Origin: Adineta vaga
Taxonomy: Eukaryota; Animalia; Rotifera
DNA: 64,000 nucleotides
Assembly: GCA_021613535.1 (NCBI GenBank)
Contig: CP075492.1
Span: 11,532,001 to 11,596,000 of the forward strand
Direction of reading: 5' to 3'
Under the pieces are notes generated by a model. That model was not told the DNA's origin. It did no database searches and saw nothing but the letters and a program-made list of their open reading frames with translations. Positions 4,280-16,523 of the stretch are shown one piece after another. How positions within the stretch are numbered: the first letter of the stretch is position 1; each line of letters opens with the position of its first letter. Made by a program: the position numbers and the translations under genes.

Positions 4280-7200
4280 ATGCATTTATCAACGATTTCA
4301 AAGAGAACAAATCACCTATTAATTCAAGTATTTAATCTTTTGTTATTTTTAAAACGTTTTGTAGAAAACTTTCATCTTTCTCTCTTATTTATTTAGATTA
4401 TATCAAATGAAGCATTTTCACATTTAATCAATCACAAATCACTTGTTTCACTACCATCAAAATATCTCCTACCAACATTTCAAATATGTCTGTATTTTCC
4501 ATTCATATATCATCATCCTTGGCTAATACTTAGAGGTAAATTATTAACTCTTGTATCTAAATATCAAGTAAGTATATATATATATATATATTATTCTAGA
4601 AGAAGAAAAAAATCTTCTTTTGATATCTCAAATGTCGTGCTTGTTTTTGAGTTCCATGATAAAGAAATAGATAGATAAATGATAATTGTGACATTCTGTA
4701 CTATGTTTTTCTTTTCCGTTTCGGAGAATTCATTAACTACGCCCATTTAACGTTATTTCGATCGACGTCATCATTATTTATCTTGACGTGAAACAAAACT
4801 TCGCTCTTCGTACATCTTCATTATGTAGCGAGAAAAAAGAACTACGCTTGTTTATATGAATAGTTGAATGAGTCGATGTAAATTTTGTTTTCTAGGTAGG
4901 AAACTATTTCGATGATTTATGATATGTTTTAATTGTTCATTTGTAGAAACAACTCTATTGATTAATTGATTAGTCAAAAAACCTCGATAATCTACTATCA
5001 TTCGGCGATTTTTTTTCTTTTTCTATCATTTGTTTCTATCTGAAGAAAGAAGGAGAGGAAAAAATCACTTGCTCGAGTTTTCTTATGAAATAGACAAGCA
5101 CAGATGTGGTGGTAGATGAGAAGAGAGAATTAGAGAAGAAAAAAAAAGGAGAAAACTGTCAGGATATATAACGACATTTAATACTAATCTGTGCAAGTGT
5201 TTGGTTAATAAATCTATACTCGCGATTTATTGCTACGAATGTCTTTTGATTAAATATTGAAATGACGTCTCATACGAAACAAAAGTGGAATCATGTGACA
5301 ATACTGTTTCTAATCGTTTCTATTGGTGAAATTATCGTTAAATATGGTAAGAAATTTTCTTTCTTTTTTTTCAATAATCATTAATGTTTTCCTAACGAAT
5401 TGATTCTTCATGTTCAGTTTGAATATAGAGCGACAAAACTAGTTCGAATAGTTTAAAATCTAGATTTGTAAGTCGACTTTTGAGATCATTTGTGCAGTTT
5501 GTATTTATGAGATAAGAAGATTTTCTCAATTCCCGCCTCCATATGGGACCTTATCTCAAGGTCAGATTGTTTATATCTTTTAGATAGAGATTAACTTCAT
5601 CGTAAATGTACTAAATTACATACATCTTACAGAAATATATTCTTATGCAATTTGATGGCTACTTGGAGACCTAGAGTTTACATTAGTTCCTAGATATATA
5701 ACAATCGTTTACCTCGAAATCTTCGGAAAAAAATCAACAATCATCAATCGAGACATTTCCTACGTTATTCTTCTCTTACATTCAACTGTCAGAAGAATGT
5801 TGTAATTTTTGTATATATAAATAAGTGATTAATCTGCGTATAGTGTCGATCTTTTACCTCCTTTTCTGCGGCATTTATTCCTTAGAACAATTTAGTCTAG
5901 ACGAACTACTGTGAGATTTATTCTCACACTTTACATCAGATATGAATGATCGGTTCATGTACATTGAATATCTTATCCTTCATTACACGATTTAAGACTT
6001 TGACCTTGTTCACTGACCACCAATCGTTCATATAATTATCAATTGATTTTTTTTTCTCCTCCGTTCTCCCTTCTTTTCCTCGCATCTTTACAGACGAATA
6101 TACGTTTTGACGTATCTATTTGTGTATAGTGAAAAGAAATGAGTGTGTGTATACGCCATTACCGCGTTCCTTCAATACAAACATATACATGCGCATACAC
6201 ATACATACATACATACATATGCACATCCTCGCCGATACATTTATTCGATGACATAACTGGTGTCTATAGTTGCAGAAAGCAAAATTGACGGACGGTTATT
6301 CTTCACCGCGTGTATGCTGAGCTTCTGTGTTTTTACCTTTTTCTGCTTATTAGCCGTTTTTCTCGGCAATATTTTCATGAGAAATTTATTTTCTTATATT
6401 GTTTTTCTTATGGATAATTTCAATAATTCATTAAATGGTAAGTTGCTCGATTCATAGAAAATTCTAATTAACATAATTTCTTCCAACATACACTGTCATA
6501 CTCTGTTTTATATATGATTTGAAAATTATTTTCAATCGCTAATTTGTATATATATAGGCCTTGATTTATTTTCTTCCCTCGATTTTTTTTAGTGTAACTA
6601 ATTCTTGCATAAGCATACAGATTGTTATAATATTGATTACGCACGTCAGCTTCACAGTATGGACGATATCCTATTTATTGTTAGTCAACTAAAGGTCGTG
6701 AATATCTATTTATGTATCATTTGGGTAATGCTGACCATTTTCATAACCATGGAAAAAACATCTTGAAAAAGATGTTGATATGGTCAAGCTTACCAAAATA
6801 ACCTAAATACATGGATAAGAAGAGAGATGGAAAGAAAGGCCATATCCTAGAGTATTTATATGTATTCTTATCCAAATATAAGAGTGAGTGTGTGAGCTGC
6901 TTTATATTTCTCGAAAAAAGAAAGAAATGTATGGAGTAACTATAGATGACGATTGCAGTCAATATCAAATGCTATTGTTAAATTGTCGTTAGTTATTCAA
7001 TCTATTTGGAATTTCTTCGACGTATGGGGTCAGGAGGTAATATAAGTAAGACGAAAGATGCAGCTTGTCACGTCTATAGATGATGAATATGATATCGTTA
7101 GAATCAATTATGACATATTTGTTTTCTTTTATGAAACTAATCAGATGATTTCATATGTTCTAGTCCGTCGTAATGAAACGATTTGCTGTTTGATCGGTTT

Positions 7201-8203
7201 TGGTATTGGTGTTGGTTGTTGTATTCTTTATCGATTCATATCAAGTTTTCTGACGTCTTCAACAAATATCATATCACCATATGATGTAAATGATACGGAA
7301 AAATATTAAATGATAAAGTTCATTTATCTTTATTTTTCTTTTCAGGTCAAAACAACAAAACCAACGATTCCTGAACGAAAACGAGAACGTTCGATTAGCA
7401 TTAAATATGAAACAGAGAATCGTGAACGAAGTAATACAAATTCAGATGAAATGACTTGGTCAGAAATGTCTTCATCGTTAAGTACCGTTAATCTACTTCA
7501 TGATTCGTATCATTCCAATTCATTAACGGGTGATTCTGGTGTGGATTGTCCAGAAATCCCAATGCGAAGTCATCAACATCATGATGATGATACAAGAAAA
7601 TATGATTCCGATTCTGGAATTCATCATGATACACGTAAGAAGAAATGTTCATCTTCATATTTCAACATTCTATCTGTTTTAGAGAAAGTTACTGAAACTC
7701 AAATGATGTCTTTTATATCAACAGAAAAAGGTTTAGAACGTGCATTGGAACAAACAAGTCGGTTTTATACGGATCTTGAACATATTGCTCTTGATCTTGG
7801 CACATTATCAAAACGATATTCACAATCCGAATCATCATTAGTTCATCCATCGATTGATGCACTTGATTGGGATTGGCTCGATGATATGCAATCACCGACA
7901 ATACAATCACCAAAAACAAATCCTCGTAAACATAATTTTCTTCGTTCAACGAATAAGAATAAAGTTCGACGAAGAATTCATGTTAATATGAATCAAACAG
8001 AATATAATGAATCTGATCAAGAGAATCGATCATTTGATTATTCAACTTCACCTTTACGACGAAGTATGAGAAAAAACGGATCTTTTGAGAGTACAAATGT
8101 GTTCATTTGTTTTTTAGGACATAGTTCAGTTTATTTTGGTTCAACTGACAATTCAAGTGATGAAGATAATGTCGGAAATGAAACACTACAAATCAAATCA
8201 TAG
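4280..8203 (+). CDS. Uncharacterised protein with one hydrophobic segment and a Ser/Asp-rich tail; 5' exons tentative
   Basis: Exons 4280-4327 and 4397-4567 (phase 0) can splice to 7145-7285 (MISYVLVRRNETICCLIGFGIGVGCCILYRF, TM-like) and then to 7346-8203. The 3' part is supported by the 297-aa ORF; the link across the 2.6-kb intron is inferred. Confidence 0.55.
6181..6220. repeat. (CATA)n-type microsatellite
   Basis: acatatacatgcgcatacacatacatacatacatacatat. Confidence 0.7.
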
Positions 8204-8756
8204 ATAAGTTTATCTTATCTTTCATTTCCGGTGTATTGATCATCGATCGAAGAGCTCGACAAATATAAAACTGCTCTTTTGATACAGTGAGATCTCTCTC
8301 TCTCATTTTCTCTCTCTCTTTCTGTATCTCTCGATGTGTCAGATTTTGATATGTCTTTAACTGATGACGCGTTTTTGTACATGTAAAATTTCTTTACTCT
8401 ATGTTTTTTGCTCTTTTTTTTGGTTCAAATTGCATTTGATTATTCTGAAACAACAACAAAAATAGAATTGCTTGATAGATATTTTCCTTTATTGATCAAT
8501 TGATGATCTTGACAATATATATTCTTATCTTTAATATTGTTTTTATATTAGCCATTACTATTCTCGGCTTGTACTGAATATTTTGAAATAAAAACAAACA
8601 ATTCATGATTTTTCTATCTGAAGTGAATTATCATTCTTTCGATCATTCTTAGAAAACAGAAAAGTATATCAAATTAATTAAATAATTTATTTGAATATAA
8701 TAAAAAGAAATAATAGATTAAGTAGACACAAGAAAAGAATTGAATGTTAATTGAAA

Positions 8757-9113
8757 TCATTCTTGTTTGAGACGAGAATCTTTAAGTTCATTAGATAAAG
8801 TTGATTCACGATCTTCAACTTCTGGTTTTGTAGCTGTTTCAGAATCTTTCTCAAAGAGAAGTTTGGTGTTATCTTTTATATCGATAGATTTTGATTCTTC
8901 ATTTACATCTTTGAATAAGAGTCTGTTCGTCATTGTTGCTTCAGTTGTAAATGATTGTTCAGATCGAAATGAATCTTTTTCCATTTCATCTAATGGTTTT
9001 TCTTCTGTTTTATCGAATTTCGATTCATCATTTGTAAGTGGAGCAGATGAAATAGTGATCACCATGGCCATAAATAAAGCAGCAAAGATGAAGATACAAC
9101 GACTGGAAACCAT
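8757..9113 (-). CDS. Small secreted acidic/charged protein (118 aa), intronless
   Basis: N-terminal signal peptide MVSSRCIFIFAALFMAMVITISSA|PL followed by a Glu/Asp/Lys/Thr-rich body. A TATAAAA box lies ~80 bp upstream on the minus strand (9191-9198). Confidence 0.7.
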   Translation of the reverse strand: MVSSRCIFIFAALFMAMVITISSAPLTNDESKFDKTEEKPLDEMEKDSFRSEQSFTTEATMTNRLLFKDVNEESKSIDIKDNTKLLFEKDSETATKPEVEDRESTLSNELKDSRLKQE

Positions 9114-9784
9114 GATAATGTATTCAAAAAATATTGAGTGTACAAAATTGTTGAAGAAGATCGATAGAAGTTAATACAGTATGATCGATGCTTTTATAGT
9201 TCAGTGAAGGTCACCGATACTATCTCTTTTTCGTTCTTTAGTTATTTTCTATTGTTTTACATCGACGAGCATTCTATTAACCTGGATAGATATAATCTTA
9301 TCAGACGATTTCGACAATAGTCCACTTCTTTGTTACTATTAACTATTGTTATCGTTCTTTGTAATATAAGATACGTGTTAGTCGATATTGTAGAAGTACA
9401 GCATAACATTGCCACATATTGGTAAAATCAGCCAGCGGTCGCCTTCGATGGGAAAGGGTTTTTAATTGAAAGAATTGTCTTTAAAATCAAAGTGTGCTAT
9501 GGTTAGAGTTTGAAACATGTTGAAACCTTTAGGACGTTCTATTTGTTCAGAAATGAACCGATATTATGAAAGCTTATTGAAAGCCGAACAAACTGTACTT
9601 GTAACATCTATTAGTATAACACTTCGTTTTGTAGAGAAACGTTAAACTCTGTGCTCACACAAACAACAAATCCATTTGAGAAATTTCGTAACGCTGGTTT
9701 TGTCGATATCAGAAAATCTTTTATGTCAATATCTAAAAACAACAAATCATAGTTTGTAATTACTTTTTATTCTAACGACACAAA

Positions 9785-11196
9785 ATGTTACCGAAAAGAC
9801 ATCAAGAAATCATGAAGCAACGCATGGCAAGGAATCGATTAAGTTTCGTTTATGAAACTTTGTCATAAACTATCTTTTTTCGACTTAGATTAAATTACAA
9901 AAACTAAAAGAACAAAGACTACATCGCGAACGTGTCAAATAGCAGCTGGAAGATGACAATTGAGCTGTTGAAATGATTGAACCATCAATTTATTTGAATT
10001 GACTTAATGTTCGTGATCTTGAAGATTTTAGTAAAAGATAATCATGTTTATTCAAAATTAGAATAACAACAAAAATCTTGTGCTACATCAAGTTGTGATA
10101 ATGTACACTATTGGAATGTTATTAAAATAATAACAGAAGATGAATTAGTTAAGAAAATTATCATTGGAAATGGATCTTAGTGAAAGAGTTAATCAACGAC
10201 AAGAAAGAGTCCATCCAAGAATAAAGCACTAACACAACTGCAACATTTGGAACAACGAATCAAGTATGATATTTTGATTGCGTTAAGGAAGTACATCTGA
10301 TTGATGTATTCAATAATAGTTAAGTTTTTAGTGAGAAATTTCGAAGAATTATCTGTCACACTATTTATTTACAGTAATCTTTTGAAAGCATAGTTTTTCT
10401 TTTAGAAATGTCAGGTCCAACTTATAATTTTAATTCCATTTTTAGAGAAGAAGGGAAAGATTTGTGCTGAAAACTTGTTCTTAAAATCAGAAATATAACT
10501 ATTAACACTGAGATTTATTTGATATTTTTATTTAGATCAAAAATTGACAATCAAACAGGTATTGATATTAGCTATTGGGAGTCACTATTGATTCAATTAT
10601 AAACACACGTGGCTCGTACATGTTAATTTGATAGACACCAATTAAGATTGAAAAAACAATTTCAAAATTAAACACAATATGTACAAATAGCTTTAATAAA
10701 CAAATCCACACAACCGATAGTTGTAGGCTTATGATAGAAATCAGTACGATAGAAAGCATTATGATGCAGATAATCCATCATCGAAAGTTGTCCAAGGCTA
10801 TAAATTTAATGTAAGATTATTTAAAATAAAAAGAAATTTTGAAAATGTTCTATTTAGATTTTTTATCCTGTTTTGATTGATAAAACTAAAACACTAACAT
10901 ATACTCCAGTAAGTTTTTTTTATTGCTTTTCTTTTCTGAATTGATTTGCTTTTTCGACTGTTTGTTAGGACAATAGAAATTTTTTGCAATTCTCAAAGCT
11001 CATGGTAGACCACCGTATAAAGTAAGAAAAACAAGATTTCCCATAGAAAGACTTCAATGTTTTTTTTCAGGATATCGCATTCAAAATGGTGAATAAAAGT
11101 TGAGATTTGTCAGTTCGACATGGATTTCGATCTCAATTTAATAATGGAATATTTCAACTATGGTTCCATTTTTCCAAATGAAAATATCGACGTTAG
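9785..11196 (+). pseudogene. CACTIN: Cactin pseudogene (introns retained; stops, frameshifts and internal deletions)
   Basis: Ordered cactin motifs: IKLQKLKEQRLHRERVK*; EPSIYLN*LNVRDLEDF; GIDISYWESLLIQL*THVAR; HYDADNPSSKVVQGYKFN|IFYPVLIDK; FAILKAHGRPPY|DIAFKMVNKS*DLSVRHGFRSQFNNGIFQLWFHFSK*KYRR*. Confidence 0.88.
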
Positions 11197-13060
11197 ACGT
11201 TTATTTTTTGTGTATTTAATAAACAACTCAAATAATAAAATCACTTTTTCATCGCCAAGAACAGAAGTTCGTTCTTATCAAACTGTATCTGCTGTGTTTT
11301 TATTGAGAAGTGTATTTATTGAACTTGAAAAGAAACTAACTATTTTATTTACTATACAATAGGATAGAACTATTATTCAATGAGAAATTCAACGCTAAAA
11401 GGTAAAGGAGAACAGGAAAAGAAGAGAATTTCATTTACACCATGGACAAACGAATATATGACTGTTCTCTATCGATATAGGTCGAAGTATGTCTTCTATA
11501 ATTACTTAATAGAAAGTAAATGATTTATAAGAAATATCTTCCTTTTCTCTCTCTCAACGATCTTAATATTTGAAAATATCTTTTTTCAATTTGTGTAGTC
11601 ACTTTTTTACTTTTATTTTGCTAAATATGAGTTCAAAAGAAAAATGTCAATTGAATGCTCATCATACCGATGAGTATTTTGAAAAAGAACAGTTTCAGAT
11701 GTGGTAACAAATTATTAAGAAGATTAAATACCTTCATAAATAACTGTGTTCCATTTTTTTAAAACATGAGGGTGATATACTCGGTGCATTTAGCTTGCGT
11801 AATGTCAAAAAGTTAATGTGAACTATCGGTACAAAGAAAAGAGAATAGCGAACCTAGGTCAACCAATTCGACGTTGGATCCGATGAATTAAATAAATTCT
11901 GCAAATACCTAATTTCTTTGCATTTTTCTCGAATTTAAAAATCCTCTACTTATATTTCGTATATGCTCAGTTAGAGTATGATTCGTTTGGACTAGTTAGG
12001 AATGGAAAGCTCATCATGTACATTATATAGTGATTTAAGGAAGGGATAGATGAAATGGAGCAGTGGAGGAATTTGAATTATTTTTGTAGGTGTCAGGATC
12101 GTATGAGATGAAATATAGGAAAGAATGTTAATGTGAAAGTTGTTTTGTGTAGAATTAATCGAGTGTGTCGGTGAAAACTAAACATTTTTCGGGGATATAG
12201 GTGGAAATGTCAGTTGATGTTGGCGTTTGTGTTGTGTATGTCTTTCTGAGTTGTTGGGGATGTCTGGCAGTGTTAATTAGTTTCATAAGCAGTATTTGTA
12301 CATCAGTAGGTAGTGTTGCTTTGGGGAAAGCACGAAGCTGGCAGTTATATTAGCTAAGTAAATGTTTTTGGTGGAAATTTGTAGTAACAGAATACGACAA
12401 AGGAGGATATCTGTTGTTGTGCTATGTGTAGGTTTTTCAAGAACGTTCGCTGTGGTTGTCAAGATGGTGGATGCCGTAGATTTTTGCTTATGATACTTTC
12501 TGATGGAGTTATGAGATATGAAATAGGAAAAATACAGTCGGCTTAAAATGTCAACGGTTCAAAAATATGAATACTACTGGGAGTTAGGTAATATATATTC
12601 ATAAATAGCGTCAAATAGTTTGAATATACTGTTTCACGTTACTAAGATCCGTTGATCCGATAAAATCCTATGATTTTAAGATCATTCAAATTGATTTCCA
12701 CAAAAAAATACCATAGACTAATGAATACCTAAAATATTGATATTATTTGGAAATATGTGTTAAGGAAATTATCAAAAGAATTGATAATTTATTAATTAAA
12801 TCGAACGATGTTGATCGACATATCCAAACTCAACGAAATCTTCATCATTCACCATTATTTTTGGTTCAAATGTTCAGTATCGACTGGTCACCGTCAACAA
12901 CAGATATGTTTTCCATCTATGATTGATCACCATTTTCAAATGATTTGAATGCTACACAGCGATAATCAGAAGTCTCAGAAATTGCATTGTTTCTGAGAAG
13001 AATACTTCGACAATGAATACGAAAATGGAAGTAGGAAATCATCATATTTTTCCGATAACA

Positions 13061-13207
13061 TTCGGACTTTTCTGATCGGAACGGATCGCAGTTGTTGGGA
13101 AGACATCCTCGGAAAAACAAAACTTTTTCGATTCGGAATTATGCTCTCATGAAATTACAGGAATACCATGGAACCAACCGTTTCTGCATCAGACTCTTCG
13201 ACATGAG
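13061..13207. repeat. Degenerate GC-richer interspersed repeat / MITE remnant
   Basis: GC-richer block rich in TCGGA/CGGA motifs, ending ggaataccatggaaccaaccgtttctgcatcagactcttcgacatgag. It resembles a repeat I associate with bdelloid genomes; no second copy in the window. Confidence 0.3.
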
Positions 13208-13251
13208 AAATAAACCAAAGTTTGATGCTAACAGTGAACAACTTCATAAGT

Positions 13252-15378
13252 ACGTAGGTGAAGTTGGCACCATATTCGAGTAAATCCTTCCCATATTCGT
13301 TTGGGTAAGCGTTCCAACAATCCTAACTAGTGTTCCAAATGAAGCTCGACGAGCTCTATCAAATGGTGTCCTTGAAATTATCAGAATCAAACATGAAACT
13401 AAAGTTATTTCATATTTTATAAACCATATCTTAACATTGAACTTATTAAAATAATTACGTAATAAATGAACTATGTTAAAATCAGCAACAACGACTGCAT
13501 GCTTTGAGTATTTTTTGGAGTGAGTCCTTTAGAAAACCTGCCAAACTGATCTTACGCGCGGAACTGGATATTTTAAGATTTTCTCATAGACAACTAATGC
13601 CATGATAATTTCAAGGACATCATTCGATAGAGCTCGTCGAGCTTCATCGGGAACGCTAGTTTGGATTGTTGGAACGCTCCTCTAAACGAATATGGTGCCA
13701 ACTTCACCCACGTAAATTAAATGCAGATGATTCTGCTTCAAACTGGATCAAACATTTTTAATGATCAGTCTTTTCTTTATTATAGTTTTCAAAATTTTAT
13801 AAATATGTTATCACGTTCGATTATGAACAACTATTCACTTTAGATAAATATCGTCGTTCACAAGTTATCAAGTTTTCGATCTTCTACAAAATCACATTGC
13901 CATTTTCTTCGTTTATCTTAACAAATCATGCCAGATATTAAGGTTTATCCAAATGGTTATGGTATTGATAAAGAGTATCACAAGGTTCCCATACATTATC
14001 AATTCCATTTTTATTACTTTGTACCGTATGTTCTCATATCTGATCTGAAAAATATTGATGTACGAGCAGAAGGATTGTTTATACAAGACGAAAACTTTGA
14101 ATCACATACGTAAGAATTTAATATTACTTTTTTATTATCGATAAATTTATTTTTGTATTTACTATCTAGGTTATCAAGATATCCTGATCGCATATACTTA
14201 CGATCAATTCATAGTATACCAATTGAACCAGCAAATTATATATTAAATATTTCAGATTGTATGTTTTGTAAAATACTTGAAGAAGATGTATATATTTTCT
14301 TTTTAATACTAGATAGGTCTCATCGAAAAGATCCATTGGACAAAAACCGAAAAAGTCAGTGTTATGGCTCTGGTTGTATCAATATTGACACCGATTTGGA
14401 CGATCTTTCAAGCAATTTATTCAGAAATGATCAAGAAAATTTGAATAAAATAAGAAAAAGAAAAACATTAAAAGAATAGTCTTTTTATGTTAATAAATAA
14501 ACGTTTAAAATAGATGTGTCTTTCCTTTATATCATTCACTACAAAGACCTAAGTCATCTTATTCGTAGGTGAACATATTTCTCTTTCATTCATATTCTCA
14601 GTATTAAATTAATTAATCGAAAATGTGCTCAATGATAACAATTTTTATTGATATTAAATAATGCACTATTGAACATATAAGAAATCTTTAAGAAATAGAT
14701 CTTTTTCTTTTGTTCAACAAAAAAGATTTTCATCTAATGTTTTGTTGATGTTCTACTCTGAATGCAACTGAAGTCAATAAGAATTAATCTTTATATCTCA
14801 ATTTTTCTTTATATAAAATAAAGAAGTTACAAGAACAGTTTCTTTTGTTTGAAAACGATTTAATATCAAATCAAATATATTATTACAATCGAGTTTATTT
14901 TACCACAAAAAAAAGCGATTAGCAAAAAATGTCAAATAATCCAGAGCATTCATCCTCTAAGGACCACACATAGTCACACTTATTGTAACAAAGAAACAGT
15001 TTCAATCTTTCAGAACTTCGGATTGAATGATAGAAAAATACTATTCACACCTAGTATGCTACTAAAACGTAAAACATCGAAATGATGGACTACTCAATGA
15101 AACATTTCCCAAAAAGGAGAATTTAAAGTCATCAATGAAGATAACCCGCTAAGTTACACCTGCAATACTCACTTAAACTAATATCGAGTCATTTTATTAA
15201 GTGGTTATTGTTATAACCAAGGGAAAAACTCGATACAATCGGTTTTCCAGAGAGTCGGTTGGAGCTATGATAATTTCAAGGACACCATTCGATAGAGCTC
15301 GTCGAGCTTCATCTGGAACACTTACCTAAACGAATATGGGAAGGATTTACTCGAATATGGTGCCAACTTCACCTACGT
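13252..15378. mobile_element. Non-autonomous Mutator-like (Pack-MULE-like) composite element, 2127 bp, 9-bp TSD TTCATAAGT
   Basis: Left TIR 13252-13383 (ACGTAGGTGAAGTTGGCACCATATTCGAG...), right TIR 15268-15378 in inverted orientation, and a third right-type TIR at 13603-13713. Perfect direct repeat TTCATAAGT at 13243-13251 and 15379-15387. No transposase ORF. Confidence 0.88.
13928..14479 (+). CDS. Captured host gene fragment inside the MULE; spliced ORF of ~145 aa, unknown product
   Basis: Exons 13928-14109, 14170-14258 and 14313-14479 join in frame through 60- and 54-nt GT-AG introns. AATAAA follows the stop. An in-frame TAA just upstream of the ATG suggests 5' decay or truncation. Confidence 0.55.
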
Positions 15379-16523
15379 TTCATAAGTTATGATCTTCATC
15401 CATGCTGTTTGTAATAATGTTTTCTCAAATTTTCTTTTTTCATCATGTCTCTATCCATTTTTCTAATTCGCATCATTATCAAATGTAGTATAAATTTTCT
15501 TCGTTGAATAAGATCATTCATTTCAATTGATATATATTATATTCTATTCTTTAAAATGAAAAAGTGAAATCAATAAAACATTAAATTTGATGTTTGTACA
15601 AATATATGTATGGTATGGTACATCCTGGTTGAAAATATGAATTCTGCATGTCTATTTTATGATAGAGATATATACAACATAAACATCTTTGAAATTGTTC
15701 AACCATAGACTTGTAGAACCTAACTAATTGTGAATGCGTGAGATACGATATTGATTTAATTGAAGAATTCATATGATTTCTCGCTCGAGCACTTTCGTAG
15801 ATTGTACAACAAATAATCAACTAGTGGTAGAAGATCTAATAATTACATTGCGTGCACAAGAGATAAGTGGTATAAAAGTTTGTATCTTTCAACTTCAGAT
15901 ATATATATATATATATATAAATCTTGATCTATAGACTTGGAAATATCTCAAGAGTGTTGATTCATATATTTATATTAAAGATTTAAATTACTCATCCATA
16001 TTATACATTAGTGAGTGCTTAACATAAACTTTAACTCAATGGTATTTCAGTTTCATTCGAGTACGGAATATGATGCGAAGCGATAATGTTGATAAACTTT
16101 TTTGATTTGTGATTTACTAATAGCTAGAACTCAGTCATTTTAACAAAAACCGCGCCTAACTTTTTTTTCTTGAAACCTTGATTTTAATTATCTCAGAAAA
16201 CATTTTTTGGGACATTCTGTATACATATAGAATGCGATGATTAAGTTTGAAAAACGGATGTTCCACATCACATTAAAAACAAAGGTTTTTTCATTATGAA
16301 CTGTATAAACAAAGAAAAGCAAAACGAACATTCTATATTTATCAAATTTAAAACATACATAATTATCACAAAAAAAACAACAGATCTCATAAAAATTTTC
16401 TACAATTTTTTTTCCAACGTAGCAAACAACAGCAACAACAAGAAACAGATTATATATGTACACACTAAAATGACAAAGAAGAGAGAAGAAAACTAATATA
16501 AATTGCATAAAATACAATAATCG

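Follow-up and report, generated by a model that had tools for sequence, protein, structure and literature searches.

Bdelloid rotifers are textbook ancient asexuals, and for that reason routes by which genes can be relocated or shuffled within their genomes are of interest. That cut-and-paste transposons can carry whole genes is well established for plants, but hardly documented in animals. A 64,000-nucleotide stretch of the Adineta vaga genome, referred to here as the window, contains a 2127-bp DNA transposon that has no transposase and is bounded by a 9-bp target duplication. A terminal repeat of ~110-132 bp occurs in it three times, and a stretch of foreign DNA with a small gene lies between these repeats.

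The three repeats are a left unit, L, and two right units, R1 and R2 (Table 1), and the earlier note on this DNA, made from the sequence alone, had placed all of them at exactly the right positions. The same 27-nt terminus opens L, R1 and R2 (three matches in the window and none in 100 shuffles), and a core motif is likewise present in each (three matches in the window versus zero expected). L and R2 are 97.3% identical (108/111), L and R1 90.1%, and R1 and R2 92.2%. The units differ in length because of two 21-bp deletions, separate from each other, each between short direct repeats: L retains both 21-bp segments and R1 shares its deletion with the family copy at C5:7015612. L has no A-type signature positions, is uniformly nearest to R2 and lacks subterminal arm sequence of its own. 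Together, L, A-sub and R1 make up a 462-bp internally deleted miniature element, close to the ~460 bp that the earlier note gave for the inner pair. The stretch from R1 to R2 measures 1554 bp; of what had been described as 1.55 kb of host-like DNA, ~1.14 kb is indeed foreign to the family, but the last ~415 bp, about a quarter, is family sequence, with a degenerate inner repeat unit (~15150-15255) beside R2. The element is surrounded by a transposon-rich intergenic stretch.

Table 1. Features of the element, in window positions, and target-site duplications of family copies elsewhere in the genome.
Feature	Position	Strand	Length	Remark
Left target-site duplication TTCATAAGT	13243..13251	.	9 bp	abuts L terminus
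L, left terminal repeat unit	13252..13383	+	132 bp	B-type
A-sub, family subterminal sequence	13384..13602	-	219 bp	belongs to R1
R1, complete terminus	13603..13713	-	111 bp	A-type; no matching duplication after it
Foreign (non-family) DNA	13714..14852	+	~1.14 kb	
Cargo gene, exon 1	13928..14109	+		ATG at 13928
Cargo gene, exon 2	14170..14258	+		after 60-nt GT-AG intron 14110-14169
Cargo gene, exon 3	14313..14479	+		TAG stop
B-sub, family subterminal arm	14853..15267	-	~415 bp	belongs to R2
R2, right terminal repeat unit	15268..15378	-	111 bp	B-type; private 21-bp deletion
Right target-site duplication TTCATAAGT	15379..15387	.	9 bp	abuts R2 terminus
Family copy	C5:15236952-15237459		508 bp	9/9 duplication CGAAAAATT
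Family copy	C2:14359241-14365428			9/9 duplication GTCGTTCAT
Family copy	C6:6163009-6163415		407 bp	8/9 duplication

The target-site duplication belongs to the outer pair only, as had been noticed before: TTCATAAGT directly abuts both outer termini as a perfect 9/9 match, whereas AAATTAAAT follows R1, and no separate duplication flanks L and R1 as a pair or R2 by itself. From base composition, a 9/9 match is expected by chance with p ~1.4e-5, and a match at the same offset occurs at 4 of 61,800 positions, which puts p at ~1e-5 to 7e-5. The whole 2127-bp unit, and not the inner miniature element, integrated as one piece at TTCATAAGT. Duplications of 9 bp are a trait of the family, a point that the earlier note had wanted checked: three are perfect in the genome, the window element included, one is 8/9, and two metagenomic family insertions also have one, with three other family copies having none.

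Arms built of ~155-bp tandem units are the norm in this family. Units of 153-162 bp form the arrays of the C2 copy, whose arms reach 1.1-1.7 kb, two-unit arms are found in C1 and C5 copies, and the 508-bp copy on C5 shows the same three-repeat L-R-R layout, with its duplication on the outer pair. We considered whether the C1 two-unit arms descend from the composite in the window and rejected this, since they fit the normal tandem-unit arm of the family and R1-type ends fit the collapse of a two-unit arm. A passenger gene that resembles a viral F-type fusion glycoprotein (~675 aa) is regularly present in the longer copies of the family, and both subterminal sequences of the window element can be placed with respect to it: A-sub leads into the 5' end of this gene in copies C1:380618 and C5:7015612, and B-sub is 88-90% identical to C4:12877298-12877710, which adjoins its 3' end.

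The foreign DNA matches no other family copy and has a single relative elsewhere in the genome, C2:6298731-6299288, which corresponds to 14005-14651 at 69% identity. It contains the spliced gene that had been recognised as a two-exon open reading frame and is now modelled with three predicted exons (~145 codons, apparently intact; annotated as A. vaga I4U23_014459). A homologue in Adineta ricciae is 51% identical; the last 19 codons of exon 1 are conserved with this protein (P0001), and a second, in-frame GT-AG intron of 54 nt (14259-14312) is predicted from an 18-residue gap in the comparison with it. Both upstream and downstream DNA accompany the complete gene. Pfam searches, for which the cargo exons were taken separately, gave no significant match for these exons or for the family glycoprotein, PDB sequence and profile searches were also empty, and Rfam gave no match on 13000-15600.

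The earlier note proposed that the intervening host sequence had been duplicated from a donor locus flanked by TIR copies, and no such locus came to light. A search of the genome, a collapsed haploid assembly of six chromosomes, with the 1554-bp interior returned only the interior itself, two family arm fragments and the 69% fragment on C2, and the A. ricciae homologue as protein query matched only the window and the same fragment. The fragment has one stop and one frameshift and is truncated by another repeat; past the part corresponding to 14005-14651, extension scores were not above those of shuffled sequence. Its flanks are repeat-rich, and the right flank alone points to C5:11.697 Mb. The window flanks map to the homoeologous region C6:3549195-3559152, where 1.5 kb corresponds to 8.1 kb of the window and the cargo is absent, and an exact search for the empty site in metagenomes gave 0 matches. 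With no donor copy and only a broken 69% fragment on another chromosome, relocation of the cargo is supported and its duplication is not. A cargo without a donor had been named beforehand as a refutation of that proposal, yet it is also the expected outcome of cut-and-paste transposition. The unit bounded by transposon ends is now the only place where this small, complete gene is present, and its sole relative lies at another position.

We infer the history by which the element was assembled, and a composite origin, in which a miniature element and the truncated arm of a second copy moved together with the cargo, is one that we hold at about even confidence. The 462-bp miniature element would derive, by internal deletion, from a full-length copy of the family. 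It would have inserted 1.14 kb away from a second copy's truncated right arm (415 bp plus R2), and a transposase supplied in trans would have paired the outermost, mutually inverted termini, L and R2, moving all DNA between them, including the 1.14 kb of chromosomal DNA with its three-exon gene. R1 would have been passed over, keeping its old flank and gaining no duplication. The perfect duplication on the outer pair and its absence from the inner pair argue for such an origin, as does the recurrence of 9-bp duplications in the family and in the two metagenomic copies. The full 27-nt terminus of R1 ends exactly at the border of the foreign DNA, and a border that is exact to the terminus is the signature of an integration junction and not of a template switch. 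L is bare and R2 has a 415-bp arm, which points to different kinds of copy, and the 219 bp beside R1 are those that precede the glycoprotein gene in the C1 and C5 copies. In addition, the 1.14 kb belongs to no family copy and its gene has a homologue in A. ricciae, the relative of the cargo on C2 is not transposon-flanked, and the homoeologous C6 region is without the cargo. The earlier proposal of a MITE joined to the end of a neighbouring copy is supported by the full terminus of R1 and the subterminal arm of R2, but the third repeat alone is no proof of a two-element composite, since the three-repeat layout is recurrent; the 508-bp copy and the multi-unit arms indicate that extra repeats can arise within a single element. 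Also against the composite origin, the genome yielded no donor locus, no excision footprint and no second copy of the composite, and no transposase with matching termini was found in the genome or the metagenomic contigs. The divergence of 8-12% among family copies makes the event an old one, and intermediates may have disappeared since.

An exact integration junction at R1 would also be left by a nested insertion, in which the miniature element entered a gene-carrying element (L0...cargo...B-sub R2) beside the cargo and recombination between left units of the same orientation then removed the outer left interior together with the inner left duplication. Direct repeats of 130 bp are good substrates for deletion, unit-to-unit collapses occur elsewhere in the family (R1 and C5:7015612 resemble collapsed two-unit arms), and Ferguson and Jiang (PMC3310237) name nested insertion, with the inner duplication lost, among the routes to multi-TIR elements. 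We nevertheless regard this course of events as unlikely: three events are needed in addition to an unexplained prior capture of the 1.14 kb, the closeness of L to R2 and its lack of A-type positions speak against it, and no cargo-bearing copy without R1 was found in the genome. Alternatively, a single element may have gained the 1.14 kb and the extra repeat by gap repair or template switching after excision, as in classical Pack-type acquisition, so that two elements never flanked host DNA. Pack-MULEs are documented, as are multi-TIR MULEs of types 4 and 5, in which gene fragments accompany an internal solo repeat; that they acquired this repeat is among the origins proposed for them (PMC3310237), and a passenger gene is regular in the longer members of the present family. 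Template switches, however, seldom stop precisely at a complete transposon terminus, unlike the R1/cargo border, the cargo is a complete gene with flanking DNA and not a fragment, and the genome holds no high-identity parental copy, all of which make this acquisition rather improbable. That nothing moved, the 1.14 kb being resident, the repeats reflecting independent insertions or local rearrangement and the 9-mers agreeing by chance or through assembly error, we consider barely credible. In its favour, only one copy of the cargo exists and the interval around it is rich in transposons, forming an island, but the low chance probability of the 9/9 match, the lack of separate duplications for the L/R1 pair and for R2, the location of the sole cargo relative on C2 and not in the homoeologous C6 region, and the small size of the structure (just 2.1 kb, inside a chromosome-scale contig) all speak against it.

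Whichever way it was assembled, the window element is real, old, single-copy, gene-carrying and non-autonomous. As the earlier note had stated, it contains no transposase: none of its open frames of >=50 aa gave a transposase match. That note also assigned the element to Mutator/MULE and expected an autonomous MULE with the same termini, which was not recovered, since all 12 PF10551 (MULE-domain) matches in the genome are more than 30 kb away from each of 50 family termini. None of 28 FLYWCH matches in the genome pairs with any of these termini either, and the one nearby FLYWCH frame is 1.2 kb outside the 407-bp C6 copy and so external to it. The repeats at four inspected MULE loci are unrelated to the family termini, genome Pfam searches for MULE, FLYWCH and IS256-type domains gave nothing linked to them, and 53 metagenomic contigs with a family terminus have no transposase inside the element; a weak P-element HTH match in one of these (L063) was rejected, as it falls outside the 686-bp element. 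The transposase of the family could be lost or unsampled. The 9-bp duplication (8-11 bp, typically 9, in Mutator/MULE) and terminal inverted repeats of >100 bp (units of 111-132 bp in the window) are as in Mutator/MULE, and an autonomous member combining these termini with a MULE-domain DDE transposase was not found. Because no MULE transposase shares the termini, we do not file the element as a MULE, and that membership is unproven. It is Pack-MULE-like in being non-autonomous with non-transposon genic DNA between its repeats, and has no identifiable parental gene copy in the genome; it is Foldback-like in its arms of tandem subrepeats that vary between copies and ends, and like a composite transposon in that independent ends flank non-element DNA with the duplication outermost only. 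The family, which is low-copy, bdelloid and cut-and-paste, looks Foldback/Mutator-like.

In bacterial composite transposons and in the Ac/Ds macrotransposons of maize, the transposase acts on the outermost ends of a pair of neighbouring elements and the intervening DNA travels with them; the logic is the same, whereas the transposase families and hosts differ and the mechanism in A. vaga is read from structure only. The Drosophila FB duplication is 9 bp, as in the A. vaga element. In Foldback-bounded composite TEs of Drosophila (Ising's TE, cited in PMC6431247), two ends of one family mobilise the chromosomal DNA between them and the arms consist of tandem subrepeats, but tens to hundreds of kilobases lie between two complete FB elements with short repeat motifs. 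In the A. vaga element, a miniature element and a truncated arm enclose no more than 1.14 kb, and the repeat units are of ~155 bp. Pack-MULEs, and the MULEs that Ferguson and Jiang (2012, PMC3310237) class as types 4 and 5 and that have one more TIR, solo and internal, are likewise non-autonomous, with long terminal repeats, genic non-transposon DNA between them, a 9-bp duplication on the outer pair only and an internal repeat without its own. These are plant elements tied to MULE transposases that are known, and their cargo is usually a gene fragment whose parent can be recognised (PMC3310237), whereas the A. vaga element has an animal host, no MULE transposase sharing its termini, a whole-gene-like cargo and no parent copy. 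Tm1, a Mutator/Foldback family of root-knot nematodes, is also low-copy and senescent in an asexual animal host, with 9-bp duplications, composite repeats of variable length and mostly miniature derivatives, some with acquired host-like sequence; it differs in its identified Phantom-type (FLYWCH + MULE) transposase and ~14-bp repeat motifs (PMC3169594). The repeats at Phantom-like genes of the A. vaga genome differ from those of the family.

Gene relocation by a composite animal transposon is a known route that is rarely seen, and the locus offers a concrete, testable case of gene carriage; it is a case of one old copy and is not evidence of duplication, current activity or an effect on the host. 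How such a family, with no transposase of its own, persists and moves in several bdelloid species is a question that the locus brings up. Tentatively, and with some doubt, we suggest that it may represent an undescribed bdelloid lineage with TIRs and 9-bp duplications whose sole conserved gene is an env-like class I fusion glycoprotein, the window copy having swapped this passenger for a host gene. If so, an env-bearing, trans-mobilised DNA transposon family would also serve to shuttle genes in an asexual animal. The AlphaFold model of the glycoprotein has a pLDDT of 34, too low for a structure comparison; the gene has been retained between the repeats by at least three divergent subfamilies and is 58-75% conserved across bdelloid genera.

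Three copies of one terminal repeat unit, L, R1 and R2, were examined in the window (C3:11532001-11596000), which comes from a genome of 100.8 Mb in six contigs (C1 to C6) with the assembly collapsed to one haplotype, and every feature described in the earlier note is present where it was placed. Each unit opens with a shared 27-nt terminus and contains a shared core motif, both found three times in the 64 kb and not once in shuffled sequence. Identity to L is 97.3% for R2 and only 90.1% for R1, and the units differ in length by two 21-bp deletions that arose independently between short direct repeats. The sequence TTCATAAGT directly adjoins the outer termini, those of L and R2, on both sides, a 9-bp match with a chance of ~1e-5 from composition and of 4 in 61,800 empirically, and the sequence that comes after R1 is AAATTAAAT. 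No transposase-like frame was found among the open frames of the element, as we call the 2127-bp unit from L to R2. We conclude that the observation is real, that the element is an old, single-copy, three-repeat composite with 1.14 kb of non-transposon DNA and a small intact gene, and that the 2127-bp unit was inserted whole by an enzyme that generates 9-bp duplications; the reading of it as a Pack-MULE-like composite transposon is supported in part.

Features of the element and of the long members of its repeat family (window positions unless a contig is named; L021, L029, L030 and L037 are extracted A. vaga stretches)
Feature	Position	Strand or size	Position in extracted stretch
L, repeat unit	13252-13383	+	
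R1, repeat unit	13603-13713	-	
R2, repeat unit	15268-15378	-	
Cargo gene, exon model	13928-14109, 14170-14258, 14313-14479	about 145 codons	
Long member	C2:14359241-14365428		L021:1042-7229
Long member	C5:300607-304359		L029:508-4260
Long member	C6:12690008-12693449		L030:509-3950
Long member	C1:380618-383128		L037:619-3129

Searches of the genome with the repeat and its terminus returned ~50 related termini in several subfamilies. Perfect 9-bp duplications surround a 508-bp copy at C5:15236952-15237459 (CGAAAAATT) and the 6188-bp copy on C2 (GTCGTTCAT), a 407-bp copy on C6 has a duplication of 8/9, two independent metagenomic copies have 9-bp duplications whose limit at the terminus is ambiguous by one base, and three other copies have none; the 9-bp length predicted for the duplications of the family therefore holds. 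The 508-bp copy has the same topology as the element, with a single left unit, two right units and the duplication flanking the outer pair, although its inner unit, unlike R1, is without the terminal bases. The arms of the C2 copy (L021:1042-2750 and 5930-7229) are 1.1-1.7 kb long, 99% identical, complementary and built of 153-162-bp tandem units, which is a Foldback-like layout except that the units are unusually long; other copies, on C1 and C5, have two units per arm. The exact 27-nt terminus pattern is present in 53 JGI/ENA metagenome contigs (L042-L094), mostly at contig ends, which places the family in wild bdelloid-like genomes; complete copies of 686-689 bp, with 9-bp duplications and arms of two units, are found at L063:8166-8851 and L058:5267-5955. 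On C1, near-identical two-unit arms at C1:380618 (+) and C1:989470 (-) face each other 609 kb apart without matching duplications, the glycoprotein gene described below follows only C1:380618, and the pair may be what a rearrangement left behind.

The ~1.55 kb interior was taken in the earlier note to be host-like, which stands for 13714-14852 (1.14 kb), the only non-family part, but not for the ~415 bp next to R2 (about 14853-15267). This stretch is 88-90% identical to sequence neighbouring a terminal unit at C4:12877166-12877710, contains a degenerate inner repeat unit and recurs in part at C3:16120734-16120857. The 219 bp between L and R1 match what lies on the inner side of A-type units at C1:380808, C1:989166 and C5:7015612. 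A copy or fragment of the glycoprotein gene lies just inside the C1:380618 arm, another adjoins the C4 arm with its 3' end toward the 415-bp sequence, and a third adjoins the C5:7015612 end with its 5' end toward the 219-bp sequence; this placement gives a full-length order of left arm, 219-bp type, gene, 415-bp type and right arm. Accordingly, L, the 219 bp and R1 form an internally deleted miniature element, and the 415 bp with R2 are the truncated right arm of another copy, in the same direction as R1.

A gene that opens with ATG and is interrupted by a 60-nt GT-AG intron lies in the foreign DNA. When its exons were searched separately, the sole homologue found was a 115-aa A. ricciae protein, with 51% identity over the second block and 13/19 identical residues at the end of exon 1; an 18-residue gap in this comparison coincides with a second, in-frame GT-AG intron, leading to a three-exon model. 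The protein search also returned the annotated product of the locus itself, A. vaga I4U23_014459 (P0002, 132 aa), which is spliced differently, with a frame shift after 'NISDC', whereas the A. ricciae homologue favours a 54-nt in-frame intron (14259-14312) and a C-terminus with the basic motif KIRKRKTLK at its end. Elsewhere in the genome the gene has a single relative, at C2:6298731-6299288 (69% DNA identity). This has an in-frame stop and a frameshift but keeps both intron positions and is thus a DNA-level paralogue; it is truncated by an unrelated repeat and not flanked by repeats of this family. By visual estimate from the alignment, the downstream or 3' untranslated stretch (14490-14650, against L032:4732-4900 in the extracted C2 locus) is better conserved than the coding exons, which are at roughly two-thirds identity, and it matches no Rfam family.

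The window flanks are homoeologous to C6:3549195-3559152. In that region, which lacks the cargo gene, the counterpart of window positions 8442-16519 (8.1 kb) measures 1.5 kb (C6:3549665-3551158). Since it is absent there and has only a broken relative elsewhere, the gene is not at its neighbours' ancestral position and is not duplicated; the proposed duplication of intervening host DNA is not borne out, the cargo being the only intact copy in the genome. The stretch 8442-16519, an island rich in transposons, also includes a ~760-bp repeat (11879-12641) of which there are >20 copies at 76-86% identity.

R1, a complete terminus, lies exactly at the foreign-DNA border, which is therefore probably an old integration junction. 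The miniature element would once have integrated into the DNA now on its right, the other cargo border would fall inside a right arm, as expected of a truncated copy, and a transposase supplied in trans would have paired L with R2, moving the composite and leaving R1 without a duplication. We give this composite move, as proposed in the earlier note, an even chance of being correct. The same end product would result if the miniature element had nested in a pre-existing cargo-bearing element that then underwent unit-to-unit deletion, a course that we consider rather unlikely, and also if gap repair had brought in both cargo and extra repeat, in the way suggested for Pack-MULEs of plants, a course to which we attach a similarly low probability. 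That nothing moved is very improbable. Under the composite, nested and gap-repair readings alike, the element carried non-family DNA with a gene.

MULE and FLYWCH domains are present in the genome, with at least six Phantom-like FLYWCH/MULE pairs, but none in the genome is associated with the family termini, the inspected loci having other repeats. The expected autonomous MULE sharing these termini was not found in the genome, and, as no MULE or FLYWCH gene is tied to them, the element is not filed as a MULE; we describe it as behaving like a Pack-type or a composite Foldback/Mutator-like element. Phantom-like transposases, whose own termini are unrelated to those of the family, are possible trans-acting partners. 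Two such genes (C2:15369079-15371049, L035:4080-6050; C1:17181739-17183903, L036:3740-5904) are surrounded by Foldback-like repeats of short (~13-16 bp) tandem motifs. A catalogue of plant MULEs with extra repeats includes some that have gene fragments and a solo repeat inside; like the element, these have the duplication on the outer pair only, with "no recognizable TSD" at the internal repeat (PMC3310237). In Drosophila, the mobilisation of DNA that lies between Foldback elements is a classical finding, as cited in PMC6431247. Asexual root-knot nematodes have a Mutator/Foldback family whose duplications are 9 bp long and whose members are mostly miniature derivatives, and the paper describing it stresses that Foldback-like repeats accompany different transposases (PMC3169594). 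Our literature searches, of incomplete coverage, returned no account of the family under study, nor of bdelloid cut-and-paste elements that carry genes.

The four long members carry no transposase. Long copies encode paired frames of 171 aa and 498 aa (about 675 aa in other bdelloids), whose product combines a signal peptide, a basic cleavage motif with a hydrophobic stretch after it, long helices and a membrane anchor at the C-terminus. Homologues of this glycoprotein-like gene are shared by three subfamilies that differ in their termini: the C2 copy is 98% identical to the C5:300607 copy, 69% to the C1 copy and 26% to the C6:12690008 copy (E = 5e-11). Adineta steineri, Didymodactylos carnosus and many contigs from environmental samples have full-length relatives (~675 aa, 58-75% identity). 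In a language-model feature search the nearest clusters were those of baculovirus F, gypsy env and paramyxovirus F, a lead that the product may resemble viral F-type fusion glycoproteins; neither Pfam nor PDB sequence searches nor an AlphaFold model (pLDDT 34) confirmed this likeness. Weaker relatives (about 24% identity) are present elsewhere in the genome and may correspond to the env genes resembling paramyxovirus F that TelKA retrotransposons are reported to carry (PMC5408684).
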